NCBI GenBank assembly: GCA_965235115.1
Contig: OZ249451.1
Coordinates: forward strand, 12,214,001-12,278,000
Source: Laetmonice hystrix
Taxonomy: Eukaryota
Direction of reading: 5' to 3'
DNA: 64,000 nt
Part shown: positions 34,258-64,000 of the stretch, piece after piece
Position numbering within the stretch: the stretch's first letter is position 1
Layout: each line of letters begins with the position of its first letter
Program-made: the position numbers and the translations under genes
Notes under the pieces: generated by a model
What the model was told of the DNA's origin: nothing
What the model saw: the letters and a program-made list of their open reading frames with translations, nothing else
Database searches by the model: none

Positions 34258-34303
34258 ATGGCGAGGCGTCTGCCGGACGGAGTCAACGGACTCACCCTCC
34301 AGG
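34258..34303 (+). CDS. Candidate first coding exon of the tau/MAP2-like gene (MARRLPDGVNGLTLQ-G)
   Basis: Strong acceptor TTTTTTTACAG at 34106, ATG at 34258, donor G|GTATGT at 34304. Phase 1 matches the next large exon. Confidence 0.5.
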
Positions 34304-36993
34304 GTATGTAAGGAGGGTAGAACTCTCACCCAAATCTCCGAATCATCTGCGATTTAAAAATCTAGGCATTTGTCCGTTTGTGTTAATTCTCAAAGGTTTT
34401 TATAACAAGCATATTGCTTTCGCAACTTACAAGTTTCTGGCAGGTGCTTGCTCTAGGTAACTGATTATAAATGTGATAATTTGTCTGTTTAACATTAATC
34501 AGTGCGTTGGTATTTGTCTTATAAAAGTTATTAACATATGGAAACATGTTTAACTTCGTTGTCTTGTCAAATAATATGTGTACATATATGTATATTAATA
34601 TTGTGCACTGGAAGATGGTTATTAATCTCACCATTATTGATTTGGGGAGAAATCGGTTCCAACATCAAGGGTAGGGGATTGGGAGTTGTATCCTCCCTAT
34701 ATTGCCTTTGTTTTTTCTCCCAGGCCAGCAGGCTGTAGGACCGGGGGGGGGGGGGTTCCTGAAAACAGGACTGCTATCACCTTGTGGTCACAGAACAGTG
34801 CCTGGTCACATGACTCATTATGGATAAGGTCGGGTTCAACCCACCTCGTACAAAATGAAAAATGAGACGCATATATTCATGAGCACGTGATACGGCCAAC
34901 CGATACGTCTGCTAGCGTCACGCTACCATGTTGGCTGCTCATGATCAGAGAATTTGCAATTCACATCCCTGTGGGAATATCGTGGGGAGGGAAGTCTGAG
35001 GCTATCCACGTCCTTGGTGTAAAGTGGAGTGTGTTCTGATTGCTTTGATTCTGTTGTCCCGGATGTGAAGAACAGGTTCCTGTGCTGCCATTAGTTCAGT
35101 GATATCACTCAGTATATGCAGGGTGTCATAATGTCGTTACGCCTGCTCATAATAAAAAGGAAGCTGGGTGATGCGTGCAGGCTCGGCTCTGCAAATGTAG
35201 GCCTATATTCAGAGTGAGAGGTCAGAGAGCCGCTGCCCCCTGACTCCCTGATCTCCAGCTTGGGTCAGGGCAGGCGGGTGACCTGTTGGATGATCCAGGC
35301 TGGTCAGTAACTAACTACCTGTGGATTAAACATTGAACCTCAGCCCAGCTGTGAATTCAGTCATGAACCTCGTTTTATTACATATATATATTATCGCCCA
35401 CAGTAGGATCACGATTCACTGATTGTTTCTTTTGCAATATGTGTTTCACAATTATGCGGAACTGATGTGCAAGCTTATCTTACCACAAAGATAATAGGCC
35501 TATGGGTTAGGTGTACTGTGATCTCACCAAAAATATGTCTTTGAAATTTACGGAGGTCTATTTAGAGAAGATAATTTGGGAGTCCAAGGCACCGCTGAGA
35601 TGAAAGCCAGCGTGGGGCACTGACCATCCACAGACCACCGACTGACCACCCGATAATATCCCTCGGTCCACAGATAGCGAAGCTGGCTTCTGTCAGGATG
35701 ACGGTACAGTGGTTGCCATGGTTTAGTTGTTGCCATGGAATCAGTAGGAGGAGATATTGATTCTCTTACTGTGGTACCAATGACGACCTGCTACAGCTAG
35801 ACATCTGGTTTACTGTGGGATGGGTGTGTGGGGCGATGGGGGTGGGGCTCGCTGGCTGTTAGCTTAGCTGGGTGGGGAGGGGCAGTTGGTTGGATCTGGC
35901 TGTAGCTGGCTGGGAGTGAACTGAGGGGACTACACCAGAGAATTCCTCTGATATATATATTATGATTTGATGATGAAGTTGACCTCAGCAGTTTATGGTG
36001 AATCATCATTCGGTTATGTGGATCGTGTTCCCCTTTCGTACATTGGGAGAACGTGAACATAATATTGATAATATTCAGCAGAGTAACTTAGTTTTTAATG
36101 TGGCATTCGTGTGCAACAGATAAGATCTAATTCCATGCAGTAAATGTGATATTTGGAATGAAGTCCAGGCGAGAAGGTAATGATGACTAAACGTGACATT
36201 TATGACAATTTGACGTGGATTGGGTCTGGCCCTGAGCTGTGGCGGTGGAGCCGGCGGCCGAGGTTTGGAACGGGAAGTGGAAATAAAGTGTTCCAAGATT
36301 GCCTTTGTGTTCCCGCCGTACTTTATCAGTTTATAGCGGTAATATTGGCATCCGGGCAACTGGGCAAGGAGAGAGCTGAGTGTGTGGTCGCCTGTTGTGC
36401 GGCAGAATACACCTGGCAGCAAAGAGGATGGTGGGGTAGAATGAGGATTCTCAATCGTCCTTCAAGGATTTCTCTTCAAATACCACCCGACATCCAGGTG
36501 TTACTGCAGAACACTTGTAATGAGATTAATTCTAAAGATATTGGAGGTATGGCTATGCCATGTACAAATCAGAACTCATTGGTGGTAGCAGTGACAATCC
36601 ATGGCGGACAACTTTAGAGTATGCATGGCGGGGGAAGAAGCCTCTTGTTTGGTAGTTACTGCCACCTTGTGGACGATGCCTTCATATTTTGGTTAGGCGG
36701 ACCCGGTTAGCCTACGGCCCTTGGAAGCTGTCCTGTCCGTTTCGGTGCCTGATTTCAGTTTTTCTGGTGACTACCTCAATGAGATTGGTAGGTGTCAGCC
36801 TCCACTTCAAAATCTTCGGATACAAAGAAAATATATACAGTGTATAAATCAAACACATCAGAAATGCTATGTTTTTATTATCTATTTTGTTGGCAGGGTG
36901 TGTCGGGAGTCGTTCATTTTTCAGGTGTTAAGGTCACTGCAGAAGGTCATGAGAACAGAAGTGAACGTTTTGGATACGGTTGTCTTGTTTCAG

Positions 36994-38184
36994 GAGGTAA
37001 AACGGTGGAGAACGGAGCGGCGCATGGAGAAATGAATTGTTCAGGAAGTGACGGTGTAATTACTCAGAATGAAGGTGTGTGTGTCCAACCTTCTCCAAAA
37101 CTCAACGGAAAACACGACGATACAAATGGTGTAACAGATAAGTCCCTAAACAGTGACCTTGTGAACTTTGACCTGGGGTTAGGTCAAGGTGAGTCCCAGA
37201 CTAAGACAGAGGTGACAGACTCAAAACATGACTTTGACCCTTTGAGTCCTGAGCTTTTCTCTGCGTCAGGTACTCAGTCTCAAGGAGGTAAACTTATTGA
37301 TCTCGAACAAATGGCGGATACTGATGACATTCACGACGCCTCCACGGCCTCTGTGACCCCGTCTTCACCACCCCATGGAGCCACGCTGGAGTTTGATCCT
37401 CTCCAGCAAGAAGGTGTGCAGGTCATGTCAGCGTTTGGGAAAACAGGCGACACGCTGGAGGAACTGGGAGTGTTTGAAGCGCCACCTCCCTCTGCTGACG
37501 CTCCAGGAGATGACCTTGTGACCTTCAGTGACGGGCCCGTGAAGCAGAATGGTGTGCCAGCTTCAACCAACCCGTTCGCAGCCGATATGGCGTCGCTGAG
37601 CAGGACGTCATTCGCTGGTCCTCCTGAAGACAAAGTTGAACCGGTAGATGTCGCTCTAGTCACGTCAGCTGTACCAGCGCCGTCTGGTGACAAACAATAT
37701 GATGTAACGTCACCACCTAAGACGCCTAAGGAAGCGTTTGTCTCTCCGCCACCCACAGATAAACCAAATGATAGATCAGAAAGTAAAATAACTCCCCCGG
37801 AGTCGCCATCAAGGAAGGTTCGGAGTGAGTCGAAGCTTCCAAAGAAAGCTACACCTCCGGAATCACCAAAAAAGAAGGTCCACGAACCAGCGCCACCTCT
37901 CGGGGAAACAGAACAGGCAAATGCCACGAAATTGTTTGAGAAGGTTGCCCCACCAACCTCTCCAGACAAGAAGGTCCAGGAACCTGCCGCTGAAGCAAAG
38001 GCTGCCCAACCCAAACAGGGTCAATCTCCAACCAAAGCATCTCCTCGTGACAAAAAACAGGTCAAGGCCAAGGATCTTCCACAGAAACAAGCCGAGGAGG
38101 CTCGACCTGATACAGCTCCCAGTAAAATCCCGTCTCCGAAGAAAGAACGAACCACACCGGCCGCTTCAGCTCCCAAAAAACAAG
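36994..38184 (+). CDS. Tau/MAP2-like gene: large projection-domain exon (acidic then Pro/Lys-rich)
   Basis: 1191 nt (397 codons, phase 1-1) within the 512-aa ORF. Acceptor TGTCTTGTTTCAG (alternatives at 36896 and 36924), donor G|GTGAGA at 38185. Many [S/T]P-x-K sites (TPPESPSRK, TPPESPKKK, SPPKTPK). Linkage to the repeat exons is inferred from architecture and phase. Confidence 0.75.
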
Positions 38185-38762
38185 GTGAGAGGTGGCGCCA
38201 CCTAGACGTGACCTTTGCTGTGGCCTCTGGCCTTCACCTTGGCACATCTTCTGTAATATTTAAGTGTGCACCTGTCATGTGCTGTACAGTTTTGCATGTT
38301 ATATGTCAGGTCGTGGTGCACGATATTTAGCCTTAGTTTTTGCAGCGCTTTAGAAGTTTGTGTTGCTTGGTTCCGTTGCCTTCTGTTTGTCCCTGTGTTC
38401 GTAGGACTGTTTGTTTCGTTGATTGAAGAGTCCATGAATGATAATTGCTAGCCTTCTCTGATCCTTGTTTTTTACATTAATTATTCGTGTATTGTTTGAC
38501 ACATGAGATTACTTTACGGATGACGTAATTCACCAATCTTGATTGCATAACGAATCAATGTTTTTCTTCGTTTTCATTATTTTATGTAGATCTACATTTT
38601 GTATGTTCTTTTAGTTCCTTATACATAAGCATGAGGGTCTATGGGACGCTTGAACGGCCTAGTTAATGTTACATTATTTGAAGACCCTTCGTTGTTGTGC
38701 TTTTGACACGAAGCATGAAGCCTGTTTAGATGTAAGAGTGAATATGTTTAAGCAGATCAGCC

Positions 38763-38822
38763 GCCAATCAGAAGCGTTAAGCTTATGCTTAAGCAATATC
38801 TTACGTTTTTTCAAATTGGACC
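38763..38822. mobile_element. Partial copy of the fold-back MITE seen at 10457-10585
   Basis: GCCAATCAGAAGCGTT...GCTTAAGCAATATCTT...AAATTGG matches the right arm. Confidence 0.6.
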
Positions 38823-39691
38823 TTGAATATCGCAGTTCCTAACTCGGAACCTAGCCCGATCCCATGACCTCGGTCGCCAGACCCCCCATCGTTATTAATA
38901 GGTTTGTTTCTCCAATATTGTATTGATGAACTTGTGATACTTACTTGTTTATATATAAGGATCAGTTATCAACTTTTTTCTCCTTACATGCTCAATCAAG
39001 TGTCAGATTAAGCCTTTATCTTTTCTCCATTTCTTTTATTGATTGATCTTTTATCGGACAATTTTAAATTTTGATGCGGTAATAAGAATGCAATCCACAG
39101 GTCAGTTTATGCCCTGACATCGACTTTACCAATTTCCTGACGCCTATAGAGCCCCGTATCTCGAGTGATTACTGGTGTCATTAGATCAGTGAGATATGTC
39201 TGGTAGACTAGGGACCCAGCTGTGGTGGGCCTGGTATGTCAGGAATGATCACACAGTTTCCTGACTCTATATCGTGAATTAAACAGTTGTCATGGGGCCA
39301 GAAGGTGGCTACGTTGTACTAACTCACTTAACCTCAGCACAGACATAATTAATGTAATTACCGTAATATAGTTAGCAAGCGCTGGCCTAATTATTCATCT
39401 GTCGTCGTTCTGTAGAGCGGGTAGGAATCATTGTTCTTGATTAGAATTACAATTGATGGATTATCTGTTGGCCCCTGGTCTGACAGATCATCCATGTGGG
39501 AATTTGTTCCCATGGCGCAGATTATGTGTGATCAGAATTGACTCAGAGTTTAAAAAAATGTCATTTTCCAAACTATGGAGAAATTATAGTTCATAGACGT
39601 AACTTATAAGTACAAGATCTTATATAAAACATTTATATAAAAGGTTGTTTCATCTGGTTTAACTTTCCTCAACTTGTTGATAAATGTAAGG

Positions 39692-39693
<2 letters not shown>

Positions 39694-39738
<45 letters not shown>
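39694..39738. repeat. (CAG)15 microsatellite, intronic
   Basis: Direct count. Confidence 0.92.
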
Positions 39739-39739
<1 letters not shown>

Positions 39740-40104
39740 CGTGGGAGGGGGCACGGCAGGGTGCAGGGGTGGCTGAAGGACGTGGGAGGGGGCACGGCAG
39801 GGTGTAGTTTGATAAATTGGTTTCTGATCAGAGATGACAGGGTTATAAACGATGGTAAATCAACGCCTTCCAGCTACTTCAGTTCAAGTCTGTGTTTTCA
39901 ACTGATAGATTATTTACCTTAGATCTGATGAGATTTGTGAAGAATTTTTTTTATTCACTGAGGCCTCTCAAGTTATCAGACAGTGACGAGATTATGACAT
40001 GAAAGTTCTCGATGTCATGTTGTCCACTTAATTTGAAAAAGAAATGTCCAGTTACCGCCGGATTGCACACATTAGAGTAATTAAATTTGTTTGATTCCCA
40101 GATT

Positions 40105-40480
40105 ACATATGTTTTTTTTTATTACCAGTTGCTGGGTGTTATGGGGACAGTTTGTGTGGAGCTTTCCTGGGTGGAGTCAGTTTTTTTATTTTTTTAATGT
40201 GTGTTTTGTTTGTCATGTATTTTTTTTATTACCAGTTACTCTGTGTTATGGGGACAGTTTGTGTGGAGATTTCCTGGGCCGAGTCCGTGTTTCGGTATTT
40301 TCTAAATGTGTTTTTGTTTGTCATGTATTTTTTTTTATTACCAGTTGCTCTATGTTAGGGGAAAGTTTGTCTGGAGATTTCCTGGGTCGAGTCTGTGTTT
40401 TTGTATTTTTTAATGTGTTTTTTTTTGTTTGTCATGTGTTTTTTATTACCAGTTGCTGTGTGTTGCTGGGTCGAGTCTGT
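40105..40480. repeat. About 108-bp T-rich tandem repeat, about 3.5 copies
   Basis: ATTACCAG at 40121, 40228, 40337, 40445. Confidence 0.85.
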
Positions 40481-42239
40481 ATTATAAAAACATCAGCAAT
40501 GTTACAGCTCCAGCAGGTCCTCTACCACCTCCCCAAGATCTCTCTCTCTCTCCATCACTGTCAACTCCTTACTACCATCTCCTTCATCTTCCCTTACCCC
40601 TCCCCCACGGGTGTTGGGGGGGGGGGGACCAAATCGCCACCACTGTGAACACGATCAATCTTCCGTTTTTTTCTGTTGGCCAAACCGTATTAAGGACTTC
40701 CTATCTTAAAGGCCAAATTCAGACTTTTATCTCGATGATTGGCGTACGTTAAGCAGTATATATAGTAGGCCTACCTTAAGACGATCGATATGTCCGTTTT
40801 CACTTAGGTATTTCAGTTTTTCAGGTTAACCCTGATATAGATATGGAGAGTTTTACCCCACCTCGAACCCACCTATATACCGTCTCTTACCACCAAACCC
40901 GTCTATCTTCTAACCTTTGATACTTTTCTTGAAATTTAGGTTCCAGAGTAAAACAAAAACGTAAGTAGGTTGGGGGGGGGGGGTAAGGGGGTCTCCCCTC
41001 CCCCTTCGAACACTTGCTGTCTCCTGTGTAAACATGTGTGACCACACCATGCATCGTGACAACAGAACGCACCCCCGGCCCACCCGCACCTTTCCAAATA
41101 CTGTTCTCTAGATAAGGGACAACTGAATATTTACATATCCTTTGGTTGTTTACATATTCTTTGGTTATTTACATATTCTTTGGTTATTTACATATCCTTT
41201 GGTAATATGAGCTTTTGAATAATGAACATTATTAATCTTGTTGCATTTTACGGATGGATTCCTGGCTTGATAGGTTGAGAATTCATACTGAACCCCACGG
41301 GAAACAAATGTGCGCTGTGGGCGCTGTTCGGTTCAAACCTGCACCAACTTCTGATGATTCTATTACAATATACTGATGTTAAATGTCATATACAGTGTTG
41401 GAAGTGTTTTGTAAACTAAAGTGGAGGAGCATGCAATAATTTAACAGTGATTCATCCTCCTGGTTTACATTGCGTCCTATAAACATTTCACTCCTGTTAT
41501 GTTGAGTGATATATTAGCAGTTTAATAATATATGTATTGTTGTAGATAACAGTGTTTCTGTGGACCGTATTATTATTAACTTACGAGTTTACGAGTGATT
41601 GATGTGCTATCCTTTGACCACCATATTGACCATTATTTCGGGACGTTCTTCCCCCCAAGAATCGCCCCCCTCGCACTACTCCCCTATCATGTCATTTAAT
41701 TTTATGACCCGATGAAATAGGTTTTTTAAATTTTTATGCATGATTACACGTCTTGCTTGATTTTCTTACTTTGGGTTCTGCATGCTCCAGTAATATCGCA
41801 AGAAAAACCTCACAGATATAAATTTATATATACAAATATATATATAAAATCGAGCAGCACTCCCAGACTGTATTCTTCGCTTAAATTCTACTTTCAATAT
41901 TTTCCTACTCAACATTGTAATGCTTCCTGTTTGAAAATTCTTGAGTTAAAATTATCGTAATTTCCAATTTGTATAAGTTGAATAATAAAATATTTTGGTT
42001 AGTCACCTTTCAGTGATCAAATAACGGTATCATCTATTGACTTGTTTCTCAACACGATCAGACCAATCAAGAGACTATCTTACACGTCCCATAAATCAAC
42101 TTTCTGTAGAATATTTTCCTTCCAGTACAAGTGCAGTGCAGGGAGCTATGGGCAGTACGATAACTCTCCGCTCTCCGTGCCCTGAGTCTGCGTGAGGAAG
42201 ATCGGATTTAAAATGAGTTGTTCTGCTTGTCTTCACCAG

Positions 42240-42289
42240 ATGGCGCTTCAGATAGCGGTATCGAAGATGAGAAGGGAACACCGCGGCGG
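42240..42289 (+). CDS. Tau/MAP2-like gene: small exon DGASDSGIEDEKGTPRR
   Basis: Acceptor CTTGTCTTCACCAG, donor GTGAGT; phase 1 to 0 links 38184 to the downstream phase-0 exons. Confidence 0.65.
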
Positions 42290-45068: not shown

Positions 45069-45124
45069 GATTAAGTTGTGTCAAAATGTCGCTTCCCACC
45101 GCTGCAAGTCCTGAAGGTTCCTCG
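45069..45124 (+). CDS. Candidate alternative exon or short-isoform start (MSLPTAASPEGSS)
   Basis: Acceptor TCCTGTAG at 45068, ATG at 45086, donor GTAAGT at 45125 in phase 0. Confidence 0.4.
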
Positions 45125-45240
45125 GTAAGTGACTATACGGAATTTGTGGCTCTGTATATTGGAAATGTTCACAAGTTTAGATGCGATGAATTTACAAACT
45201 AAGACCGATGAGGGAGATGGAAGCTGGAGTAGCTGATTGA

Positions 45241-45352
45241 CAAAACCAGTCCCCAGACACAGCTACCATTTCAACAAAAATTCACTTCCCAGACACAGCT
45301 ACCATTTCAACAAAACATCAGTCCTCAGACACAGCTACCATTTCAACAAAAA
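45241..45352. repeat. 36-bp tandem repeat x3
   Basis: CAGACACAGCTACCATTTCAACAAAA recurs at 36-bp spacing. Confidence 0.85.
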
Positions 45353-45498
45353 AAATATTGTAATGATCGCGTTTTCCAACCGATTCAGTCCCCGAATACA
45401 ACTATACCGATCGTAATTGAAACATTTAAAATATCTGATTGGATGGATGTTATATTTGCTGGTATATTTGCTATTTTATACTTCCTTTAAAACGACAG

Positions 45499-45525
45499 AA
45501 CGACCTCAGTGATGTCACCAAGGAG
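45499..45525 (+). CDS. Candidate 27-nt microexon NDLSDVTKE
   Basis: ACAG| acceptor after a T-rich tract, donor GTAAGA, phase 0-0. Confidence 0.4.
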
Positions 45526-45855
45526 GTAAGACTGAAGAGTTCCAAAAAATGATATCTTTAGATGGATAATAATCTTGTCTGAGTGTTTGTAAGAGGAAAT
45601 ATTCGGAAATTTTCAATGAACCCACTGTGACGGAATAATTGCCCCATGGTCGGAAGTTTCACATTAAGTTTTCCTTAATTTTAGTTGACAATATAATATT
45701 TTGGTTACACTGAGTAAGAATGACTGGTGACTTTCAGATGATTGCATGAACTCCTAGATGTGATTTCAACCAGCCTGTGATATACGTACACAAAGCATCC
45801 GAAACGTTCACACAAAATCTATCAGTAGTTATCGCGACTCCAAGACTGACTCGCG

Positions 45856-46341
45856 ATGACTGATGTCAGTTCTGAAACTCTCCAAAAGGAGGCCTCGAGA
45901 AGTAAATCAGAAATGAGTAACCAATCCAAATTAAAGACATCGGCTGGCCTACAAAGAGCTGGCCAATCAGAACTCGAAAAGGAGTTATCTGAGATTATAC
46001 CTGGCCAATCAGAACTCGCAAATGGCAGTGACCAATCAAAAACAAAGAAGCCTGAATCTGATCCCGAAGAAAGTTTTCCCGTTGAGGAAGCAGCTTCAGA
46101 GAGAAAATTAAGTAGTGAGGATACCAAGACGCCGGGAAGTCACACCTCCCTAGACTCGGCCAATGGCAGCCTGGATGGAGAGACAGTTACCATGGACAAG
46201 GACGGAAGTCGACCGTCAACCCAGGTCAGCAGGGAACGAACCTTCACCATGGAGGAATACAAAAAAGCGCCCTCTATTATTCTGAGTGAGAAACGTCAAC
46301 TGACGAAAGCTCAGTTGTCCGGGTCAGACTTATACCCGTCG
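45856..46341 (+). CDS. Ser/Glu/Lys-rich coding segment, probably an alternative exon of the MAP gene
   Basis: 162 open codons with disordered-protein composition, ending at donor TCG|GTAAGG in phase 0. The 5' boundary is unresolved (in-frame TGA at 45847). Confidence 0.55.
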
Positions 46342-47196
46342 GTAAGGAGTGGTTCCTTTCCACACACACTATAATAGTATGCTTGACGATATACGACTCT
46401 TGCCTTGGACACGTTTTCTTTAGAACGGCTAGCAATGAACATATCGCATGTAGCACGAGTTCTACAACTCTCAGCACCAGCACAATTTCTTCTCAAATAA
46501 TCTATTGACCACATAGAAACATTGCTCCAAATGAAATCCCTGGTCAGGAATAAAAACACTATAATTCATAACTGGCTGTGGTACAAGGGCTTCGCCTTGA
46601 TCACCAGAATTATGAATTATAATATAATACGTTCATAGTTTTAGAGAGATCTTTAACGGTGTAGAGTTGAAACACTTTATTTTCTCCTCACTGAATATCC
46701 CGACCGTGCCATGATAGAGTAGGAAGCTTTGACTTTGTGTAGGCGTAGTTGTATCACTGATAGGCGTATTAAAAACGAGTTGTAACGTCGCCACTTTGAC
46801 ACCCATACATAGATCTACATAGATGTGTTTTATATATTTTTATCTATCTGGCGAAGGAGATAATCAATCATTATCTCCTAAAGTCTGAGGTCGTATACAT
46901 AATTAATACTATATGAGTGTATAGGAGTGACATTTAGTCCCAGTCAGTCGTCTTCTGGAAAGTTCTGTGTAGTTGTAGCCAAACTCCATATTTCCATATT
47001 GAGGGGGACACAATTAGAGTTTTATTTATACGTCATCTAATGCCAAGATGTCACAGGATGGGTCGCTTCGCTGACCAAGAGGGCAACCAAAGTGAGCTAC
47101 ATGTAGACTGAGGGCCTACAGGAAGCAGGAGAAGGACGGGGTCATCCAGACGCTGACTTCCTCCTGACTGATGTCACCTGGCGGGGGTTGATATAC

Positions 47197-48648: not shown

Positions 48649-48820
48649 ACAGCGAGCGCGGGAGACAAGAAGAAATATGGAATCGACGCCAAGAATACTA
48701 CCTACAAACCTGGCGGGGGCAATGTGAAGATTTTTGAACAGAAAATGGAAGTGAAAAAAGTAGGATCGCGAATTGATGCCAAACATTCGCCTCGAAAGTC
48801 GGGAGAGTCGCCGAGAGTGC
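48649..48820 (+). CDS. Tau/MAP2-like gene: exon with atypical repeat (GIDAKNTTYKPGGGNVKIFEQKMEVKKVGSRID)
   Basis: Acceptor TCTCTTACAG, donor GTAAGT at 48821, phase 0 to 1; PGGG and KVGS motifs. Confidence 0.85.
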
Positions 48821-51543: not shown

Positions 51544-51662
51544 CGGCAAGTAAAAAGATCACGGAGACGATTAAAACTATGACACCGTCTCCGAACACCA
51601 AGAACGTTACGTCAAAAGTCGGATCACTGTCCAACGCCAAACACAACCCTGGCGGCGGAAAC
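51544..51662 (+). CDS. Tubulin-binding repeat exon 1 (PNTKNVTSKVGSLSNAKHNPGGGN)
   Basis: Classic tau/MAP2 R1-like sequence; phase 1 to 0; AG/GT boundaries. Confidence 0.93.
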
Positions 51663-52990: not shown

Positions 52991-53089
52991 GTGAGGATAG
53001 TTCACAAAAGCCAGGATTTGACGGGAGTCGCCGCCAAATGTGGGTCAACCGCTAACATCAAACACCAACCAGGTGGTGGAGTCAAAAAG
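52991..53089 (+). CDS. Tubulin-binding repeat exon 2 (VRIVHKSQDLTGVAAKCGSTANIKHQPGGGVKK)
   Basis: 99 nt, phase 0-0; resembles tau R2/R3 (KCGS). Confidence 0.93.
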
Positions 53090-53445
53090 GTCAGAGGTCA
53101 TACCTATCCTAGTGCTCATCTAAAAATAGATATAAGCAGCTACTTATTTTAGAAACATAACTGTAAAACAACATTAGTGTTTTTATACGTTTAATCAAGT
53201 ACTAGACAAGTTTGGGTCACCTGGTTTTAAGTAATATTTACCGGTATAATTAATATCTACATGGTAAAATTAGAAATTAAGAAAATGAAGGTATTAGGTG
53301 AGTGGCATCCTAACCTGCTTGCTTGTGTAACCCTCTGGAATAGAACTTTCCATTTGTAGAGAAACAGATGAAGTGGCTGCAATGAGGGCAGGTATTTTGA
53401 GCTGAAGAGGGTTAATACTCAGGTTAGGGGTCAATTTGTTTTCAG

Positions 53446-53535
53446 ATTGAAAGTCGGAAGTTAGACTGGAAGGTGGAGTCCCGCGTTGGGTCGATGAATA
53501 ATGCCACTCACAAACCTGGAGGTGGAGAGAAGAAG
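53446..53535 (+). CDS. Tubulin-binding repeat exon 3 (IESRKLDWKVESRVGSMNNATHKPGGGEKK)
   Basis: 90 nt, phase 0-0, AG/GT. Confidence 0.93.
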
Positions 53536-54340
53536 GTAACAGTTGAGACACTGGGTTCCTGACCCACCTTTAGTCTCACACACCTGTAGAATCGTACACA
53601 CCTGTACGTTCCTAGACTCTACATATCAGAGTTTGACAAACTCTCCATGAGGAGGATTTTAGTAATAGGGGAAACATTGATGATATTATGAAGTAGGTCT
53701 AACCAGTGACGGGTGCCTCCAGTGGAAATTAAGTGATTCCAAATTTCCCAGTGCTGAGATGCCTCGGTATATGACGTCATGGTAACTGATGTGTATTGTA
53801 AATGCTCCCCATGCTCCCGGACGATTAACACGCATGCCCAAGAAAATCCCCGTGTTGCAGTAGTTGGTAGAGACTGCCATCTGGTGTTGGCACTCGGAAC
53901 TACCTATTTTCCACCAACCCAAATCTGGCGACCAGGTGTTGTATATAGTGAGGGAAATTATGCTAATGTGGCTACATAAATGTGTCGCAAACATTTTCGT
54001 TATTTCCAGATTTATCTGCTATCCGACGATCGGAAATTAACGAAAAACTACTTAGCGAAATCCAAACAGAGAATTAGTGAGAGTTTAAACCCACCAATTA
54101 AGCCACACCCCTGACAATAACAAACGGCCCCACACTTATTTTTCGCAGTAACCACGCACTGTTTCCCCAAGTCCACATGGTCACAGAGCTACAATAATTT
54201 CCATAGATTTCACCTCAGTAATATTCCACTCTCCTGTTCTCCGACTTCTCTCTCTGGATTTGTCTCGTTGTGCCACCAGACGGCGCTGATGGTACTAATT
54301 CCTGTTTGTTCTCTGTGTTTACATTCTACCCAATGTACAG

Positions 54341-54430
54341 ATTGAGTCGCAGAAATTGGACTGGAAGGCCGAGTCCCGTATTGGTTCACTAAACAATGCC
54401 CAGTATAAACCTGGAGGCGGGGCGAAAAAG
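54341..54430 (+). CDS. Tubulin-binding repeat exon 4 (IESQKLDWKAESRIGSLNNAQYKPGGGAKK)
   Basis: 90 nt, phase 0-0, AG/GT. Confidence 0.93.
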
Positions 54431-54910
54431 GTGAGGCAAGAATCGAAACACGGGATCCCATTGGTCAGCTGGTGGAAAGTAGGTCAGCCTTGGTGGCGGC
54501 TAACATCAAAGGAAAATTGTCTCGGTCGGTTTATAATGGTATTGAGGGCAATACAATTATTTCAGGTTAGAAGGGCTCCTTTCTTTAAGAGAATAATTTC
54601 TATCAGTTCAAAAGGGCACCTGCTTGTCAAAAATACACTTTTTGCTGAATTACTGGAGGTTTTTTTTAAAAAGATTCTACAACTTCAGACTTGGTTGTTT
54701 TGAGGTTTTAAAAACAGCATCAAGATTGTGTTTAGAATGACATGGTAGGCCTACAATGTGTATTGTGAGGAATGTTAAATGAAAGAGAGTGAACTGTCAG
54801 CGCTTGTTAGAGGAGAAGGTAGTGTATCAACTGTAACAATCTTGACGCGGTATCATGCCATGACAATGAGACGTAACAACGTGACGTGACAGTTTTCCCA
54901 GACATTAATG

Positions 54911-55030
54911 TCTAAAACAAAATTTATTTTGTCTGAGACAAAATTTATTTTGTCCGAGACAAAAATTATTTTGTCTGAGACAAAAATTATTTTTGCCTCG
55001 GACAAAATAAATTTTGTCTCAGACAAAATT
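54911..55030. repeat. 20-bp repeat array that inverts (fold-back)
   Basis: AAATTTATTTTGTC[T/C]GAGAC units followed by their reverse complement TCGGACAAAATAAATTTTGTCTCAGACAAAATT. Confidence 0.8.
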
Positions 55031-55322
55031 ACTTCAATTTTCGCTTCCTTAACACTCGTCTAAACAACAGGTGTCGCCAGTAAGTGTTCATTTATCTCGC
55101 TCCAACCGTGACGTGGGGATAAATCCACGAGATCCAGGTGACCACGTGACCGGCCAACTTCTGTACCTTACTCTCCTCTCTCTCCTTTTACAGGGGATAT
55201 CGTAGGAGCCGCTTCTTGAACACATATCACCTTTTGTATCAAACTTGGCTCTGCATCTATTCAATTTAACCTGGATATCAAGATCAGTGAATTAATATTT
55301 TGCATGTCTGTTTTGATGACAG

Positions 55323-55412
55323 ATCGAGAGCCGTAAACTAGAGTGGAATGTAGAGTCAAAAGTTGGGTCTCTAGAAAAAGCGGATTATAAACCCGGAGGT
55401 GGCGATAAAAAG
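55323..55412 (+). CDS. Tubulin-binding repeat exon 5 (IESRKLEWNVESKVGSLEKADYKPGGGDKK)
   Basis: 90 nt, phase 0-0, AG/GT. Confidence 0.93.
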
Positions 55413-57098
55413 GTATCAGTCCTCATGCAGAATGCCTTGTCGTAGTTTCCATTACTCTGCCCCAACTGTTTCTCACCTTTTTCTGCGTCATGAACTAGTT
55501 TGATTGTTTTATATTCTACTCAGTAAATAATTGTAATGATTTTCTATCTGAATAAACATTTACCCATGATTAGGAATGATACAATATCACATGCCTGATT
55601 CTGCATGACGCACATTTAAAGTATTTCTTCGATCTAAAAAATAATAAAAAGGATAAATATGGTGCATAATAAATCTCTGTAGGCCGCTGCTAATGTAATA
55701 TTGTACTGTGAGTGGAAGTACAATTTACATTTATCAGCTTTACAGAAGATAACATCTGCATTAGTGGTATAGAAACGCTTATAGTATTTCTATAAATGCT
55801 AATAGTGGTATCTCAGAACCTTTCTATCCCTTAGTGGTAATTATGTATCCCTCTAGCTGTTGTTGGTAACCGGCCGGTCAATCTATACGTTATTAGTTGC
55901 GTCATTCAGTAGTGAAAAAGTGCCCCCTCTCCCATCTCTCTCTTTGAGATTACCAGTTACTTGTACAGATCTTGCATTTGGGTAGTTAGTATATTTTCAT
56001 ACGTTCCTGTCGTCTTTGATGTCGATGTAGATTTTGCAGTATTTATCGAGTGTACCTCGTTGTCCTGATTTCCATTTAAATAGTATATATTGTTAAGTAT
56101 AAAATTTGTAGGGGTCTTATTTCTTAAGTCGTTATTACTTGACCATAGCTGTGTTAGTCAATTATTATCATAATTACGTCATTCTATCATGATGAATTGA
56201 GAGCGTGATGCATTTACCTGCTAAGGCCAGGGATTCGCTGTTGTCCACATTTAACATCTGCCAAGTAAGGTTGGCCTAGTAGACATGTTGCTGTTACTAT
56301 AATATTTGATGTAATTGGTAATGCCACAATTTAATACAAGTGCATGGCTGCATCGGAAAGACTTAGATTCGAAGAGCCGTGTACATGTAATAGTAGATGA
56401 GCTTGTGAATATCAGGGTCATCATGACACCACGTGAGATGACGTCACATTACAGTAACCTCACATTGCGTCACATTAGGATGACGTCACATTTCGTCACA
56501 TTACGGAAGCCTATAGTGTACCACAATGGTGAAGCTCTCACACACTGAATGAAATCGCCCAGACGAGGTCACCCTATATAGCCAACATACTTTGGCTACA
56601 TGAGGTGACCTCGGCAAGGCTTGCCTGGCTGCAGTTAGACTGATATTCATTGCCTTTACGGCGGAATATCTGTAGAGTAGGTGAATGACACCACACCTCT
56701 GAATTTTTTATAGACCTACTGATACATAACCTAATAGGGCCAGCCAAAAAAAACGCTCCCATAAGTTTGATGATGGAATGATAATGTGGCTACTTCTAGT
56801 GATATTCAAGGTTAATGTGCAAATATGCCTCACTTCAGATTCTTAGGATATAATAGAGATTTGTTAATTTTCTTTCATTGCCATGTAATACATTTCAGTG
56901 CAATGAATTTACTGTAACCAGATAGAATGAAGGTTGCCACTTAGAATTCAACCATTGCAAATTTAATAATGCTGACAATTGTATTTTTACAGATTATTTT
57001 GATGATAATACATGTCGTGGATGGCAATAATAAATTGAGGGTTAATGATTTTCTCTAATGGGTGGCATTCTCTGTGTGTTTTCTGTGTTTGATGGCAG

Positions 57099-57188
57099 AT
57101 TGAGAGCCATAGGCTCGACTGGAATGTAGAATCCAAGGTCGGGTCACTAGAAAAAGCGGATCATAAACCTGGAGGTGGCGAAAAAAAG
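57099..57188 (+). CDS. Tubulin-binding repeat exon 6 (IESHRLDWNVESKVGSLEKADHKPGGGEKK)
   Basis: 90 nt, phase 0-0, AG/GT. Confidence 0.93.
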
Positions 57189-58227
57189 GTACCCGAGGTT
57201 GAGCATCTTATTCTCAACTTCCGCTCTTTCGTCTCCTTTCTGAGCATTATGTGAACCCTCGTGTTGTGAAAGTGATAGTCGAGCGCTGAGCGGGAGGACG
57301 GAGATGAAGTAAGGCACGAGCATGTAAGATAGAGTAGGCCTATTCCAGTTATCTTTGGGCCTTTTAACGCTGCAGCCTATGTTGTATACTGGTTTAGTGG
57401 TGTATTCTGAATTTATTTGTTTTACGAAGTCGGTAATCCGTTCAGAAACACAAACATGATCCGACTACCTGTGACAGGCTGTTATCGCAGCGGTAAACTT
57501 GCAAGAAAGGAATATCTCGGGAACTGAGCTTCAACTTAATCAGGAGGTTAATGAAACAGTTATTGTGGTCAAAGACACACACTAAGGCACAACCTCCAAC
57601 GATTCGATTTTTATTCCTCATTATAAGGTTCTGAATAACGAATGAAACTTTCTGCTTGCTATATTCTCAGATCGCAGTTGTTTCAATGATTTTGCCTTGG
57701 AGTTATTAAATTTCACACCAATTGTTGCGGAATGCTCTCTTTACGATGTCTTTAATTGTTTCACGTAAATCACAAAGTGTTCTTTTCGACGAATGTTGAA
57801 TTTTGATCACTCAGCCGCATAAATCTTGACCTAGAAGTGACCTCTAATTCCGCTTTGAATCTCACAGCAAATGATCTCAAACTTGAGACACAGTCCCATT
57901 CTTTTTGGACATGTGTGCAGTCAGTCCCAGTTTGCCGCCTTTAATATGAATGGCGGACAACAAAGCAAAATAGAAAAGGTAAAATAGATGTGGAGATGGA
58001 TACGCATGTAGTATGTGTCCCAGAATTAGTAGATGGTATTCTATTCTTCCAGGTTATTTCATCAAGTTGACAGAACTCGGTATTTGAGCTCCAAACATGA
58101 AGTTTTCCTTTCTTCACAGATCCTAGCTGTTACTCCTTCGTGCGGTTGTCTCTCTGTGCCCCTTTCGCAATTATTGCTCTATAATTCGGAATGAAAGTAC
58201 AACGTCATTTGTTTTGAATTGTAATAG

Positions 58228-58317
58228 ATCGAGAGTCACAAAGTTGGCTGGAACGCAACGTCTAGAGTCGGGTCTCTAGAAAAAGCGGATCACAAACCAG
58301 GTGGTGGTACAAAAAAG
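58228..58317 (+). CDS. Tubulin-binding repeat exon 7 (IESHKVGWNATSRVGSLEKADHKPGGGTKK)
   Basis: 90 nt, phase 0-0, AG/GT. Confidence 0.93.
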
Positions 58318-59524
58318 GTAGAGAACAACCTCTCTGTCCTTTCCTGATCCGGATTATGTAGTTCCTTGTTCTGTGTTACGATAGAACCCTGTTTGTTACT
58401 TCCTAAAACGTCGTTGAGTTGTGATGTCATGTTTTTGGTGTGTTTTTTTAACGAAAAATAAACGAAGACGTCTTAAATCATGGAAAATATACGAAACAAA
58501 CGAAAGGGTCTTAAAGACCAGGCTTTGGCCAGCTCTTAGAAACGAGTTGGGGAAAAAATCGGAAAGACAAATTTAACAAATTGTGCTTCCCAAGAAAAAA
58601 AAAGGTCGCTGACACTTCGGTATTGCGACGTCAAAAGTTCAGCTTCGAAAATCCCACGAAGGTTTCTCTTGCTCTATGTCTTGAACGACTCGTGGCTACA
58701 GTCCCATTGTCAGGGTAGATAGTTTACAACATCGACCATCACTGACTAGTATTCCTGGAACAACTGACGTACAGTACGCACTTCATTCATGGAATTCCAA
58801 TTGTGCGACTCTCCTGTCCCGTTTGAACCTTGCGGAGGCTGCCCTCCCTGGACAGTAGTGACAAGCTGTCAAACAGTCACTGCCTACTCGTTATCCACTA
58901 AATGTTTATGACCCAAGTAAGATGTTTCGTTCTCTGAGCCTCACTAGTTTCACATACGGTGTCATGGGTCATTTGCATGGGCGTCTCGATGATGTCATGG
59001 TTGTGTCTCGTTATAAACTAAGTCATGTTCTCTCGTTTTATCTCTTACAATATCACTGCACACCCTTGCATGTGGCACATTTTCAACATCATTGTTCCCT
59101 CCACCGACACCACTGGAAATGTTTACGTTTCCACATTGACATATTTGTATTTCAGGTACTGCACGAACAAAATAATGTTGTTTCCATGGTCTTGATTGCC
59201 TCGGTTGGTGTTGAGGACCTGTATTTTGAAGTAGTACACTAGTCTCTCACTTTGGTACCACGGTAAACGTTTCAAGTGAACCAAGAATGTAACTTATTAT
59301 TTATTCAAAAAGAGTACCTTTTCCAAAGAAAAAAACGGAAATACAAAGGAAAGTGTTGTCTTTGACCATAACCAGAGTGAGATTTAGTAGTGGCATTTCT
59401 AAGACTTCAAACTTCACGTTTTACCCCTGTTTTTAATCGCCATCTATAGACAAGTCGGAACTGCTCACTTCACTGTTACATCTTGGACGTAACCGTTGAC
59501 ATATTGTGTGTTTTGTTTGTTTAG

Positions 59525-59620
59525 ATCGAGAGCCACAAAGTTGCTTTCCGGGAAAAGGCGACCTCCAAGGTGGGATCAACCAAGAACCTCAAACACCAGG
59601 CTGGAGGAGGCACGAAGAAG
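59525..59620 (+). CDS. Tubulin-binding repeat exon 8 (IESHKVAFREKATSKVGSTKNLKHQAGGGTKK)
   Basis: 96 nt, phase 0-0, AG/GT. Confidence 0.93.
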
Positions 59621-59817
59621 GTAACGGCAAATGTTCCCCTTGGATCCTGACAGATCCGACCTGAAGCCGTGTATACAGGCCAAGAATCTGTCCATACGTA
59701 TACTTTGGAGTAAAGGATTAGATTCCGTGGGTCAGTGTGAGATTGTCTTAGGTTGTATGTATCAACAGTATCATTCATGGGATCAATCCCTGTGATGAAT
59801 TCATGAATCAATTCCAG

Positions 59818-59913
59818 ATTGAGACGCACAAGATCGAGTTCCGCGAGAAGGCCGCTCCCAAAGTTGGCTCCACGAAAAACCTTGACCACCAACCTGGAGG
59901 AGGAGATAAACAG
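59818..59913 (+). CDS. Tubulin-binding repeat exon 9 (IETHKIEFREKAAPKVGSTKNLDHQPGGGDKQ)
   Basis: 96 nt, phase 0-0, AG/GT. Confidence 0.93.
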
Positions 59914-60187
59914 GTAGGAGCCACTACTACTGCTCTCAGACACCAGGTGGCGCCACTGAGGGGGACCCTTGATGGCCCAAGTCGAGGTCTGGCCGTGACG
60001 TCACCAAAGGAGCGATAATAAAGGTTTATTCCGTCCAGAAACAATAGAATTATAAACAGCGTTTCTCGCCTAGTTGATGACGTGACGGCCCTGCTCTTAA
60101 CCCTCTCATGTGAGTGTCAGTTCAGCCATGTTTGATGTAGCCATTTAATGTGCATGACCCTAATGCCCTGTTTTGTTTGGCCCTTAG

Positions 60188-60283
60188 ATTGAGACTCACA
60201 AAGTGGACTTCCGTGACAAGGCCGAGCCTAAAGTTGGTTCGACCGCCAACTTGGAACACCAGGCCACTGGTGGCGACATCAAA
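60188..60283 (+). CDS. Tubulin-binding repeat exon 10 (IETHKVDFRDKAEPKVGSTANLEHQATGGDIK)
   Basis: 96 nt, phase 0-0, AG/GT. Confidence 0.92.
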
Positions 60284-60885
60284 GTAGGTCGTCAACCCGT
60301 TACAACACAAGATTGCCGCTTTTGAACGATTACATTCTGTTATTGCGGGAAAAGGGAATTAACCATGTTTTGGGTCACGTGTTTGTTTCAATGTCATACA
60401 CTGGCCCAAGTACATACGTTTTATTTGCACACTATTCGTATATCGGAGGTAAACGAATGACTGGCATTGTATGGTATAATGCAATCTAGCAATCACATAA
60501 ATTTAATGATACATGTATATATTACTTAATTATTCTTTTATTTTTTATTTCGTTTTATTTGTTGTTGTGTAGCATGTTGTAGGCCTATTAGATAGAAATC
60601 TACAGCGAGTAACCCGGTGAGGCGTCTATTATTACTGAGCACCTTTCCTATGAGAGGCCTCCTTCCTTTTCAAGGTCTCTGTATAAAATCCGATTACAGT
60701 AATGATTGCCGTATACGTGTTCAAAGTTAGGCCTAATATTACGTCATAGGCCTATATCTATATCTCTACACTGGTGAGTGCAGTTTGCCGTGCAGTAGAG
60801 CTTATAGTTACCAATAATAGGGACTTCTTACACACTTAAGGTACTTAGACAAACGCGAATACAATAGGGATATTGTGTTGAAGTT

Positions 60886-60996
60886 CTCTCTCTCTCTTCT
60901 CTTCTCTCTCTCTCTCTCTCTCTGTCTCTCTGTCTCTCTCTGTCTCTCTCTCTCTCCCTCACTCACCCACCCTCTCTCTCCCCCTCTCTTTCTCTC
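60886..60996. repeat. CT-rich compound microsatellite
   Basis: Direct observation. Confidence 0.9.
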
Positions 60997-62690
60997 TAAA
61001 TACAGTTACGCACATTCTATGCCTTAGATGTCATCTGAAGTATTTATATAAAGTATTTGGTGTCAACCACACATAGATCTAACTGAGAGTCATAGGCCTA
61101 CGTCGGAGTTTGGATACATGCATTATGGGTGGAGTGGAAGGGCGATAGGATTATAACATAGAGAGCTGCAGCACACTGAGCTTACCTTAGTTCAAGTCAC
61201 GGAGGTCATAGGCTTGACACCGCTTGAGGATTAGAATACAACTTACAACTAATCAATCCATGTGGGATCCGTTTTTTGACGTAGGGATCTACTACTATAC
61301 TTACAAACTACCCTATATATACGCCGGTATATCTTGTATACCGGTACACACAGCTGGCAGAGACCGACGGTCCGGTCCGGATATCTTAACGTTCCATCGC
61401 AAAACTCACCCCTGGAAACCACGGCTGACACCAACACCACCTTATGGCTTGAAGCCATACCTGAGGGTGACCAGAAACCCGGAGAATCTTTGACCAGTCC
61501 AGCTCCAGGTTCATCTGCAACCACAGACTCGGCCGAGTTTTATGTCACCAGCAGTTCAACGTACAATAACGTACAAAACTCTGTAGCCATGAGAAATCTC
61601 TGCTGCTGCATGGACTTGCTGCTGAACGTTCGTCAACAAGCAGGATTCTGATTAGGCCGAGATATCCTCTAATCGCGGTTCGAGGTTTTCCCAGTCACCA
61701 GAAGAAAAATCAAGTTTCAATCATTTCAAAAAGAGCGCAGACTGAAAAGAAAGACGCAGGCCTACCTGTTTTGCGAGTTGTGTCTAGCCAGCGTTACCAT
61801 GGAGAGGAGGTCACTGGCGTTCCCCGTTACGTTACCTCGCGAGGGCAGACCGCTGAGTCTGCAGGCGAGAGTCTACCGCCTAAATCAGCTCCAGCTGAGA
61901 GGAGACGCTCACAACAAGAAATATACCATCATCACAGGTCAGCTAGACGCTGACCCTGATCAGATGGTTCAGGCACTGACGCCGGAGTCGCGTAATCCAC
62001 CTTGTCGGCCATTAGCAGTAAGGGACGCCAACACTGAGGTGTAGTTTCAGAATTTTGTTTCCACTTTTTTTTATTTATTCTATACTCGATGTTTTCATAG
62101 ACAAGCCGTGCGTCCCATAGAGACATATCTACGGTGAGATAAGCAGCCTGAAACCATAACAAAAGATAACCTAGTTAAATTCCAGTTGGACTTTTACTTC
62201 CCATAAATCCTTCACTCCAGCAATAGTGCGTTTATTCGACAGAAGATCTCGGCTTGCAGCAAGCACGCCAATATTTACCTGCAGGCCTACATTATGATGT
62301 AAAAGATTACATGTGATATTAATGGCTCAAACTGAGTGGCATTTACCCTTATTAGGTGAACTGTTGAAGGAAAATTAAACACTGAATGGTTGTCACTGTC
62401 GGTGTTGGTCATTGTGATTTAAACTGCAGCACGTCAGTGTGTTGGCCGTTGTTACATGTCCAAGTTTACAGTATTGATTCACCACCGCGGGGACAAGTGT
62501 TGGAATGCAGAATTCACTCGTGCCACGGGTTGACTGTTTACCACCACGGTGGAGACCATGTCGAAGTGGCCAGAGGTTGACGTGATTTACGAGGGAACAG
62601 ACAGAGACTGAAGTGCTCGTCAGCTCTGTCATGCGTCGCTAACTTACTGTCAGTCTCAGGGTTGTTACGTTGCGAAAGTTGAGGCACTGG

Positions 62691-62885
62691 CGTTAGAGCA
62701 CCAAGTCCAGCGTTGGAACACCAAGTCTAACGTTGTAGAACCAATTCTGACGTTGGAGCACCAAGTCTAACGTTGGAGAACCAATTGTGACGTTGGAGCA
62801 CCAAGTCTAACGTTGGAGAACCAATTGTGACGTTGGAACACAAAGTCCAGCGTTGGAGTACTAAGGCTAACGTTGGAGCACCAAT
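62691..62885. repeat. 20-bp minisatellite x10 with partial 40-bp alternation
   Basis: CGTTGGAGCACCAAGTCTAA alternates with CGTTGGAGAACCAATTGTGA. Confidence 0.9.
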
Positions 62886-63031
62886 GCCTGAATGTACGAG
62901 TGTAAACGCGGTTTGGGCCCATTAGTTCTCTTACAGGACGTCATCAGCCGTGAACTCATGCAGTTATCAAAAATATCGTCACTTGTCAACCTACAGAGGG
63001 CGTGATGATCATCTGTGCCGTGTAAAACTAG

Positions 63032-64000
63032 AATCGAACTGGAAGCGAAATGCTGAAGTGGAAGGCTGAGGCCCGGGTGAACACTTCCAACCAGCCGTAC
63101 CAGCCAGGTGGGGGGAAAGTCAGAATTACTGACGAGAAACTGAACTGGCAGGTGGAGGCACGTATAAATGCGAACAATCCTGGGTACAAACCTTCAGGGG
63201 GAAACGTTCGCATTACAAATGAAACACTAACATGGAAGAGATTGCCTAAGATCGACGCCCAGAATGAAGGTTACGTACCTCAGGGTGGGAACATCACCAT
63301 TACGGATGACAAGGTAAAATGGAGGTCAGAGTCTAAGGTTAAATCAATGGAAAATCGATATTACCAACCGAAAGGTGGACAGGTTAAGATTCTAAGTAAT
63401 CTCGTGAAGTGGAACGCAGACCCCAGAGTTGGGTCGCTCCAAAATGTCACCTGGAAATCTGAAGGGGGTCGAAAAAAAATCCCAGCGGAAAAACTAAGCT
63501 GGAAGGCTGAGTCGAAAATAGGATCAAGGGACAACATTGGCCATGTGGCTAAAGGTGGAGCAGTGAAAATACGTGACGAAAAACTGATGTGGAATCAGGC
63601 GTCTAAAGTTGGATCCCTAGAAAATGTTTCTTGGGTTCCACCAGGTGGCGCCAAAACAATAGAAACGCGGAAGATAGACTGGAAAAGCGTCTCAAAGGTC
63701 GGATCAAAGGACAATATTGGTCATGTCCCGAGAGGAGGTGAAATAAAAATCAAAAGTGAAACGTTATCATGGAGGAAAAGCGCGAGGATTGGGTCACTTG
63801 AAAATGTGACTTGGAAATCTCCAGGTGGTCATAAAAGGATTGAAACTCGGAAACTTCTTTGGAATGTTGAGGCAAAAGTCAGATCAAGAGACAATATTAG
63901 GCACAGACCTCAAGGGGGCGATGTCAAGATAGAAAGTCAGAGACAGAGATGGCAGAGGAAGTCAAAAGTTGGATCTCTGGAAAATGTAGGGTGGAACCCT
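63032..64000 (+). CDS. Uninterrupted frame encoding at least 10 complete tau-like repeats plus a partial one (runs off window)
   Basis: 323 stop-free codons after TAG at 63029-63031, first ATG at 63050. Example repeats: VKIRDEKLMWNQASKVGSLENVSWVPPGGA and KTIETRKIDWKSVSKVGSKDNIGHVPRGGE. Absent from the ORF track because there is no stop in the window. Confidence 0.92.

Follow-up and report, generated by a model that had tools for sequence, protein, structure and literature searches.

How many tubulin-binding repeats can a protein of the tau/MAP2/MAP4 family carry, and do the repeats that stand in line at one locus all belong to a single protein? The question is raised by a stretch of 64,000 nucleotides from Laetmonice hystrix, here called the window (contig OZ249451.1 of assembly GCA_965235115.1, positions 12,214,001 to 12,278,000; in our numbering G000:C21:12214001-12278000 of a 627-Mb, 35-contig assembly), for which an original prediction, made from the bare sequence, had proposed one tau/MAP2-family gene with at least 21 microtubule-binding repeats. 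Here we demonstrate the identity of the repeats and the boundaries of the exons that carry them, and we show that an mRNA of the locus is spliced around two long repeat frames in the last intron, a nested layout that is found in three other genomes as well. The arrangement is best read as a canonical mollusc-type tau-family gene with nested intronless paralogues, a reading that we hold to be probable rather than secure. The two inner frames, one of 524 residues with 17 repeats and one of 919 residues, would on this reading be independent genes with promoters and start codons of their own. Both the single frame of 17 repeats and the array of 32 or more in a relative (L036) exceed in length any annotated tau-family protein that we found.

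Family membership was judged by tandem repeats of ~30-32 residues above the gathering threshold of the Pfam family PF00418 (Tubulin-binding; cut-off 27 bits). A six-frame scan of the whole genome gives 28 matches at this locus only, all on the + strand and spanning 51600 to ~69530 (positions past 64000 continue the numbering of the window, since the flanking DNA beyond its end was also read), and elsewhere just four weak matches with E>0.7. Because the matches are confined in this way, the locus is the sole tau/MAP2/MAP4-family locus of the genome, and the family assignment made earlier from the letters alone holds. The repeats at the locus number 27 above the Pfam threshold and about 32-34 when degenerate ones are counted, which exceeds the minimum of 21 first proposed. 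The motifs typical of the family are also present, the canonical exons carrying 8 KxGS, 11 [KR]xGS and 9 PGG-type motifs. Binding to the microtubule lattice is the likely function of all three products of the locus, judging by the family to which they belong.

The canonical gene consists of the following parts, all on the + strand:

36925..38184, + strand: putative large projection-domain exon, an open frame flanked by tttttcag (acceptor) and CAAG/GTGAGA (donor), its boundaries inferred
45856..46374, + strand: Ser/Glu/Lys-rich open frame, candidate further projection-region exon, with a sub-threshold Pfam match only
48649..48820, + strand: exon A, atypical pre-repeat (KKYGIDAKN...YKPGGGNVKI...KKVGSRIDAK), with splice sites and an in-frame junction to exon B
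51544..51662, + strand: exon B, first true repeat, R1-like, ending in ...HNPGGGN (PF00418, 40.1 bits)
52991..53089, + strand: exon C, Cys-containing repeat (AAKCGSTANIKHQPGGG), like tau R2/R3 (PF00418, 46.3 bits)
53446..53535, + strand: exon D, 90-base phase-0 repeat exon, in the RNA contig (PF00418, 53.3 bits)
54341..54430, + strand: exon E, 90-base phase-0 repeat exon, in the RNA contig (PF00418; RNA joint)
55323..55412, + strand: exon F, 90-base cassette repeat exon, skipped in the RNA contig (PF00418)
57099..57188, + strand: exon G, 90-base cassette, 84% identical to F, skipped in the RNA contig (PF00418)
58228..58317, + strand: exon H, 90-base cassette repeat exon, skipped in the RNA contig (PF00418)
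59525..59620, + strand: exon I, 96-base repeat exon (IESHKVAFREKA...), in the RNA contig (PF00418; RNA joints)
59818..59913, + strand: exon J, 96-base repeat exon, in the RNA contig (PF00418; RNA joint)
60188..60283, + strand: exon K, 96 bases, last repeat exon, in the RNA contig (PF00418; RNA joint)
60284..64000, + strand: in-window part of the last intron, which as a whole runs to G000:C21:12285261
71262-71363 (G000:C21:12285262-12285363), + strand: tail exon (IESHKLDFREKAAARTQHG...stop; tail IESHKLDFREK...), from similarity and RNA

Exon A is of the mollusc type, placed before the first true repeat: it shares 62-72% identity with the KKYGID exon of scallop tau-family proteins, and among the proteins fetched the KKYGID motif is confined to those of molluscs. 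All ten one-repeat exons, B to K, score 38.8-53.3 bits against PF00418, compared with the cut-off of 27. The original prediction had already pointed to the atypical exon at 48649, which indeed joins in frame to 51544, and to the ten one-repeat exons between 51544 and 60283, all of which were recovered with starts that differ by 0-6 bases. Exon A meets exon B in phase 1 on both sides, every later junction is in phase 0, and the phase-0 introns of the repeat exons are placed after PGGGxKK. AG/GT sites are present at 12/12 exons (A to K and the tail), and when these are concatenated they give one uninterrupted frame of 1230 bases, or 410 codons, that ends at the stop of the tail exon. The latter was located by its resemblance to tail sequences from Haliotis, Pecten, Mizuhopecten and Lingula proteins and is preceded by a long, strong pyrimidine tract and a CAG acceptor; it lies 7.3 kb past the end of the window, downstream of both the 17-repeat and the 919-residue frame, and both of these frames are therefore situated inside the last intron of the canonical gene.

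Because they are symmetric and in phase 0, the repeat exons can be used as cassettes. Exons F, G and H, which are of the LEKAD type and show 74-84% DNA identity to one another with flanking introns that cannot be aligned, are precisely the three that the RNA contig skips. Upstream, the proposal of an acidic and Pro-rich projection region stands as far as composition goes: the frame at ~36925-38184 is acidic in its first half (D+E 16%, K+R 4%) and Pro/Lys-rich in its second (P 18%, K+R 19%), a tau-like composition that makes it a putative exon of the canonical gene. It does not extend to sequence similarity, as the same frame has no Pfam match and does not resemble the N-termini of homologues. 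With ten repeat exons of which about seven are used, the canonical gene is, as read from its sequence, ordinary for a mollusc and matches earlier reports.

How this gene is spliced can be seen directly. Four public runs contain this DNA, all of them from the assembled sample; three are DNA, with introns and exons covered alike, and one (X4) is RNA from an unknown tissue, held in the form of contigs from which rare isoforms are lost. Contigs of X4 were placed over 54301-60300. One spliced contig of 928 bases (depth 24) has GT..AG joints exactly at the exon boundaries of the model: its loose end before 54339 matches the end of exon D, E is joined to I (54428>59523, cut +2; GT..AG, with 5094 bases skipped including F, G and H), I to J (59618>59816) and J to K (59911>60186), and behind 60283 its letters are identical to the start of the tail exon. 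The mRNA is composed of D, E, I, J, K and the tail, and it bypasses both the 17-repeat and the 919-residue frame. The idea that all repeats of the locus are combined in one gene and one protein is not supported by this contig, the sole transcript evidence; the contig passes from 60283 straight to the tail exon, skipping the 17-repeat frame, and leaves out three of the one-repeat exons as well. Counting B and C, which are assumed to be included while only D onward is observed, this mRNA would hold seven repeats. Exon F is covered in X4 by an unspliced low-depth contig only, and low-depth unspliced intronic contigs also occur in the 54301-60300 region. For the interval 63032-64000, X4 contains <5% of the sampled words; the three DNA runs contain 100% of the sampled words of the 17-repeat frame.

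Both inner frames lie on the + strand of the last intron:

63050..64000, on to TAG at G000:C21:12278622-12278624, + strand: nested 17-repeat open frame, from the open reading frame (ORF) and PF00418
G000:C21:12281793-12284552 (L031:5793-8552), + strand: 919-residue frame, intronless, in the same last intron, beyond the window

The first of these opens at 63032, has its first ATG at 63050 and, having been seen earlier only as a repeat frame still open at the end of the window, runs on for 624 bases to a TAG at 64622-64624, with 17 repeats in all. It comprises 530 open codons, or 524 residues from the ATG, with an isoelectric point of 10.3, no domain other than the repeats, and neither an acidic projection nor a Pro-rich region; the part inside the window alone reaches 213.6 bits against PF00418. 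Its first three repeats, degenerate and with a period of 29 residues, are similar to the atypical repeat in exon A; the remaining fourteen keep an exact 30-residue period above the Pfam threshold, and an 18th repeat is truncated by the stop. We count 11 KxGS, 14 [KR]xGS and 15 PxGG/PGG motifs, PGGG being often relaxed to PxGG. The array is one uninterrupted frame, and the organisation of one repeat per exon is not found in it.

At the DNA level the 90-base units of the array share 45-64% identity among themselves, and Tandem Repeats Finder does not report it; the positions K-x-G-S, N, P-x-G-G, K-I and W are nevertheless retained in 10 or more of the 14 typical units. A unit resembles the next but one more closely than its direct neighbour, which gives a super-repeat of 60 residues, an alternation of two repeats. 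The best identity between units is 0.55 within the array and 0.56 against the array of the L036 relative; because units are as similar between species as within the array, the array predates the split from this relative and has been kept since. A HMMER scan of 1.84 billion representatives found nothing nearer to the 17-repeat frame than 45-50% identity. A label of "W-type" for the inner repeats was dropped, as Trp is also found in the middle repeats of the canonical gene, and no splice donor is proposed near the end of the frame, where the candidates AAA/GTCGGC and GAA/GTTTCT are both weak. A 20/40-base tandem repeat lies just upstream of the frame (L031:691-884), and a 47-base satellite with ~17 copies, 90% matching, occupies the space between the two nested frames (L031:3453-4275, G000:C21:12279453-12280275).

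The second frame has 941 open codons, of which 919 are counted from the ATG, and it scores 103.8 bits against PF00418 over 3 stretches, with one or two further weak repeats. Besides the repeats it has an acidic stretch and a long C-terminal part, and the frame also contains an in-frame tandem repeat of a 27-base unit, x12, that encodes GVREHRSPP. No named orthologue of it was found, the sole match from the orthologue search being an ENA ORF call, P0009; its C-terminal REGTYDV and its stop are shared by P0009 and by a second ENA ORF call, P0016.

Nested placement, that is, in the last intron, on the same strand and 5' of the tail exon, was found in 4 genomes. In Haliotis asinina, a single-exon gene of 389 residues annotated as "microtubule-associated protein tau-like" (XP_067685815.1) lies inside a canonical gene of 1642 residues, on the same strand as its host and in the stretch that separates the last repeat exon from the tail exon; NCBI treats it as a separate gene, while listing >10 isoforms for the host. 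In L036 (ENA ERZ25767047 ctg39007) the order is a repeat frame of 1504 residues, 6.7 kb, P0016 and the tail exon, the last of which is ~75% identical to that of the Laetmonice hystrix locus, and P0016, by its shared REGTYDV and stop position, is the orthologue of the 919-residue frame. Within the 1114 of 1504 residues of this L036 frame that were examined (L036:1-3342) there are ~10 atypical 29-residue and 22 typical 30-residue repeats, hence at least 32. In L039 (ENA ERZ25071447) a Haliotis-like repeat frame precedes the tail exon by 745 bases. In these relatives the counterpart frames extend without interruption over 1504, 445 and 389 residues, and one of them is annotated. The nearest Atlas cluster consists mostly of molluscan taxa. 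A word-based search with the L036 array found no annotated protein covering more than ~35% of it, and did not recover the 1504-residue protein itself.

Some further observations concern the same relatives and repeats. Certain neighbouring units of the 1504-residue frame are 73-83% identical, which suggests more recent amplification of repeats in the L036 lineage. In L039, one-repeat exons of the canonical type are present in opposite orientation ~8 kb past the tail exon (L039:19682-20884, minus strand) and suggest a second, inverted tau-family gene. The atypical class of 29 residues (IDxxNxxYxPxGGNVxIFxEKxxW) also occurs in stand-alone proteins (P0018, P0137, P0081 and P0107), which come from other assemblies, rotifers (Brachionus) and a chytrid fungus (Irineochytrium), and it may be an old subclass of the tau repeat.

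What are the inner frames, then? That they are genes of their own agrees with the position of their start codons: in 7/7 inner-type frames the first ATG stands 3-22 codons after an upstream in-frame stop, and in 6/7 at most 11 codons after it (6 codons in the 17-repeat frame, 22 in the 919-residue frame, 3-11 in the five others), a closeness that would be superfluous in an internal exon. It agrees also with the repeats themselves, as an inner-type profile built from other species fits the units of the 17-repeat frame better than a canonical profile does, by +8.7 bits on average (12/15 units positive), whereas the canonical exons on the same pair of profiles give -8.2 bits and favour the canonical one; the inner-type profile has four training proteins, only one of which is demonstrated to be nested. 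A number of points weigh on the other side. The one RNA run, whose contig form and tissue were described above, shows neither a transcript of the 17-repeat frame nor a start or poly(A) site for it. Only in Haliotis is an inner frame annotated as a gene, the others being mechanical ORF calls, and the N-terminal domain of the Haliotis type (VPYVSVKRRxDGKY...EVKFRSIxPEWKYS) has no convincing match in the 92 kb examined. Other points fit better with the idea that the 17-repeat frame, and separately the 919-residue frame, serves as an alternative last exon in tissues or stages that were not sampled, so that exon K or an earlier repeat exon would be spliced to the AG at 63031 and yield an isoform of up to 27-28 repeats that ends at the stop of the frame, which would be the giant tau of the original prediction in the shape of an isoform. 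The 17-repeat frame begins exactly at such an AG, in phase 0 and compatible with the donors of exons C to K; a pyrimidine-rich, acceptor-like phase-0 site precedes the 919-residue frame; the inner frame lies in the same intron and on the host strand in 4/4 genomes examined; and AATAAA was not found after the stop of either frame (within 3 kb for the 17-repeat frame), where ATTAAA variants alone occur. Large tissue-specific alternative exons are moreover established in the family, in exon 4a of big tau and the exons of high-molecular-weight MAP2. We nonetheless consider the alternative-exon explanation unlikely, if worth keeping in mind: the X4 contig skips both frames and X4 has almost nothing of the 17-repeat frame, 63032 is preceded by a weak pyrimidine tract, the acceptor-like site of the 919-residue frame falls inside a two-copy 106-base duplication, and in the NCBI annotation the Haliotis counterpart stands as a gene of its own with a single exon, despite the many isoforms of its host.

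Decay of an old retrocopy or segmental copy that makes no protein would account for the silence of the 17-repeat frame in the RNA run, for its lack of introns where the parent has one repeat per exon, for its three degenerate first repeats and for a stop in mid-repeat. Yet 530 codons have stayed open while the units diverged to 45-64% DNA identity, the motif positions have been kept selectively, and the counterparts in relatives are open, one of them annotated; because long open frames of this kind occur in four genomes and the array is older than the split from the L036 relative, a relic is improbable. An assembly artefact, in which a tandem repeat was mis-expanded or collapsed, is barely credible: the array is indeed seen only in runs of the assembled sample, with no independent DNA confirmation, but units below 65% DNA identity, which Tandem Repeats Finder does not detect, make mis-stacking impossible, the three DNA runs hold all the sampled words of the frame, and the L036 relative has a similar, longer array. 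Nested independent genes beside a canonical one thus stay the preferred reading.

Under that reading the locus would comprise three + strand transcription units, namely the canonical gene, the 524-residue frame and the 919-residue frame. The first would be assembled from an acidic/Pro-rich exon, the KKYGID exon, ten one-repeat exons and a short tail exon, and its symmetric phase-0 cassettes would make the number of repeats tunable by splicing, as with tau exon 10. The strongly basic 17-repeat product is predicted to bind the microtubule lattice with its repeats head to tail along a protofilament, like tau. The repeats themselves are intrinsically disordered. In cryo-electron microscopy of tau, each repeat spans ~8 nm on the microtubule. 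By that measure the 17-repeat product could cover ~17 tubulin dimers, or ~130 nm, with no projection arm, and would staple or stabilise microtubules instead of spacing them; the 60-residue alternation of two repeats might correspond to a lattice period of ~16 nm, if one repeat equals one 8-nm tubulin dimer.

We tentatively propose, with somewhat more doubt than confidence, that molluscs possess an undescribed class of tau-family proteins, nearly pure long repeat arrays encoded by intronless genes that are nested in the last intron of canonical tau. If this is true, such proteins could serve as extended staples or rulers along protofilaments of stable microtubule arrays, such as axonemes, sperm or sensory cilia, and not as neuronal spacers. 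Tau-family proteins have been studied almost solely as vertebrate forms of 3-5 repeats, and the effects of repeat number have been argued from 3- versus 4-repeat constructs; a natural protein with 17 or at least 32 repeats and no projection domain would offer a test of additive binding, of span and of a 16-nm readout. From a practical standpoint, gene finders will fuse such nested frames into implausible giant tau genes or drop them, and comparative repeat counts (e.g. PMC8985376) depend on how nested frames are handled.

Other features of the window are unrelated to the repeats. At 11748-12890 (+) lies an intronless alpha-1,3-fucosyltransferase of 380 residues (GT10; PF00852, PF17039), whose best named relative is from Elysia chlorotica (41% identity). 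An open frame at 1894-2250 (+) has a glutamine-synthetase-like motif, with no Pfam match at the threshold used, and probably represents a glutamine synthetase exon. A frame of 229 residues at 13698-14387 (+) resembles the tail of a retroelement reverse-transcriptase ORF, a putative assignment, and a run of 164 N at 25181-25344 marks an assembly gap or masked stretch. Outside the window, the mitochondrial COX1 contains 12 TGA codons, TGA being read as sense. Together with the KKYGID exon, the nesting shared with Haliotis, the mostly molluscan Atlas cluster and the Elysia match of the fucosyltransferase, this points to a probable molluscan affinity.

Among known systems, the vertebrate genes MAPT, MAP2 and MAP4 resemble the canonical gene in PF00418, in the KxGS and PGGG motifs, in having one repeat per exon, in alternative inclusion (tau exon 10), in the R'-like tail IETHKLTF and in an N-terminal half that is acidic and then Pro-rich. 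We know of no nested paralogue in the vertebrate tau, MAP2 or MAP4 genes. Intron 9 of human MAPT hosts an unrelated intronless gene, saitohin, which is a parallel in layout only. Vertebrate tau, MAP2 and MAP4 have 3-5 repeats, with 7 in Notothenia (PMC4815063). The baseline of 3-5 repeats against which the original prediction had measured this locus is outdated for invertebrates, as taxon averages of 3-5 conceal 7-10 repeats in some molluscs, 10 of them in Crassostrea gigas (PMC8985376), and annotated proteins reach 12-13.

The closest likeness to the canonical gene is found in mollusc genes (Haliotis rufescens LOC124115086, Mizuhopecten yessoensis LOC110460313 and the 10-repeat MAP of Crassostrea gigas), which have the same order of parts: the KKYGID exon, an R1-like and an R2-like repeat, several KLxW and several KLxF repeats, and an IExHKLxFKE tail, which in Haliotis, Mizuhopecten and Pecten reads IExHKLTFKE[ST]AK... 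after the repeats. Mollusc isoforms differ by 30 residues, which fits the use of one-repeat exons as cassettes, and mollusc tau-family proteins have 8-10 repeats, to be compared with ten repeat exons here, at least three of them skipped in the observed mRNA. There is no essential difference between these genes and the canonical gene, although its identity to any annotated protein is just 42-50%, so that databases cover this lineage poorly.

For the inner frames the nearest parallel is the Haliotis protein XP_067685815.1 (389 residues, with orthologues in H. rubra and H. cracherodii), which consists, as here, of intronless repeats in the last intron and shares its repeat profile with the 17-repeat frame. 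It differs in having ~5-6 repeats together with a conserved N-terminal domain of 120 residues (also in P0012), a domain that the 17-repeat frame lacks, and Laetmonice hystrix, unlike Haliotis in this comparison, has a second inner frame, that of 919 residues, without a named orthologue. Literature searches did not find a description of a nested position coupled to a very long array without further domains.

As to length, counts of annotated arrays were made on ~400 fetched proteins, none of which approaches 17 repeats in one frame, the annotated maximum being 13; a longer annotated array should have surfaced, because the HMMER scan ranks by summed score. The longest are, by our own count:

13 repeats: Lytechinus pictus MAP2-like XP_063952560.1 (Pfam-confirmed)
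12 repeats each: Lingula tau X2, Clavelina LOC143466172 and Strongylocentrotus MAP4 X13
11 repeats: an intronless frame
10 repeats: a Nucella lapillus protein
9 repeats: Haliotis proteins

In the longest annotated arrays, those of Lytechinus, Strongylocentrotus, Lingula and Clavelina, PF00418 repeats follow one another head to tail almost to the C-terminus, just as they do here. There, however, the array follows a long N-terminal region and is encoded by a multi-exon gene, whereas the 17-repeat frame is a single exon-like frame that consists of the repeats and nothing else.

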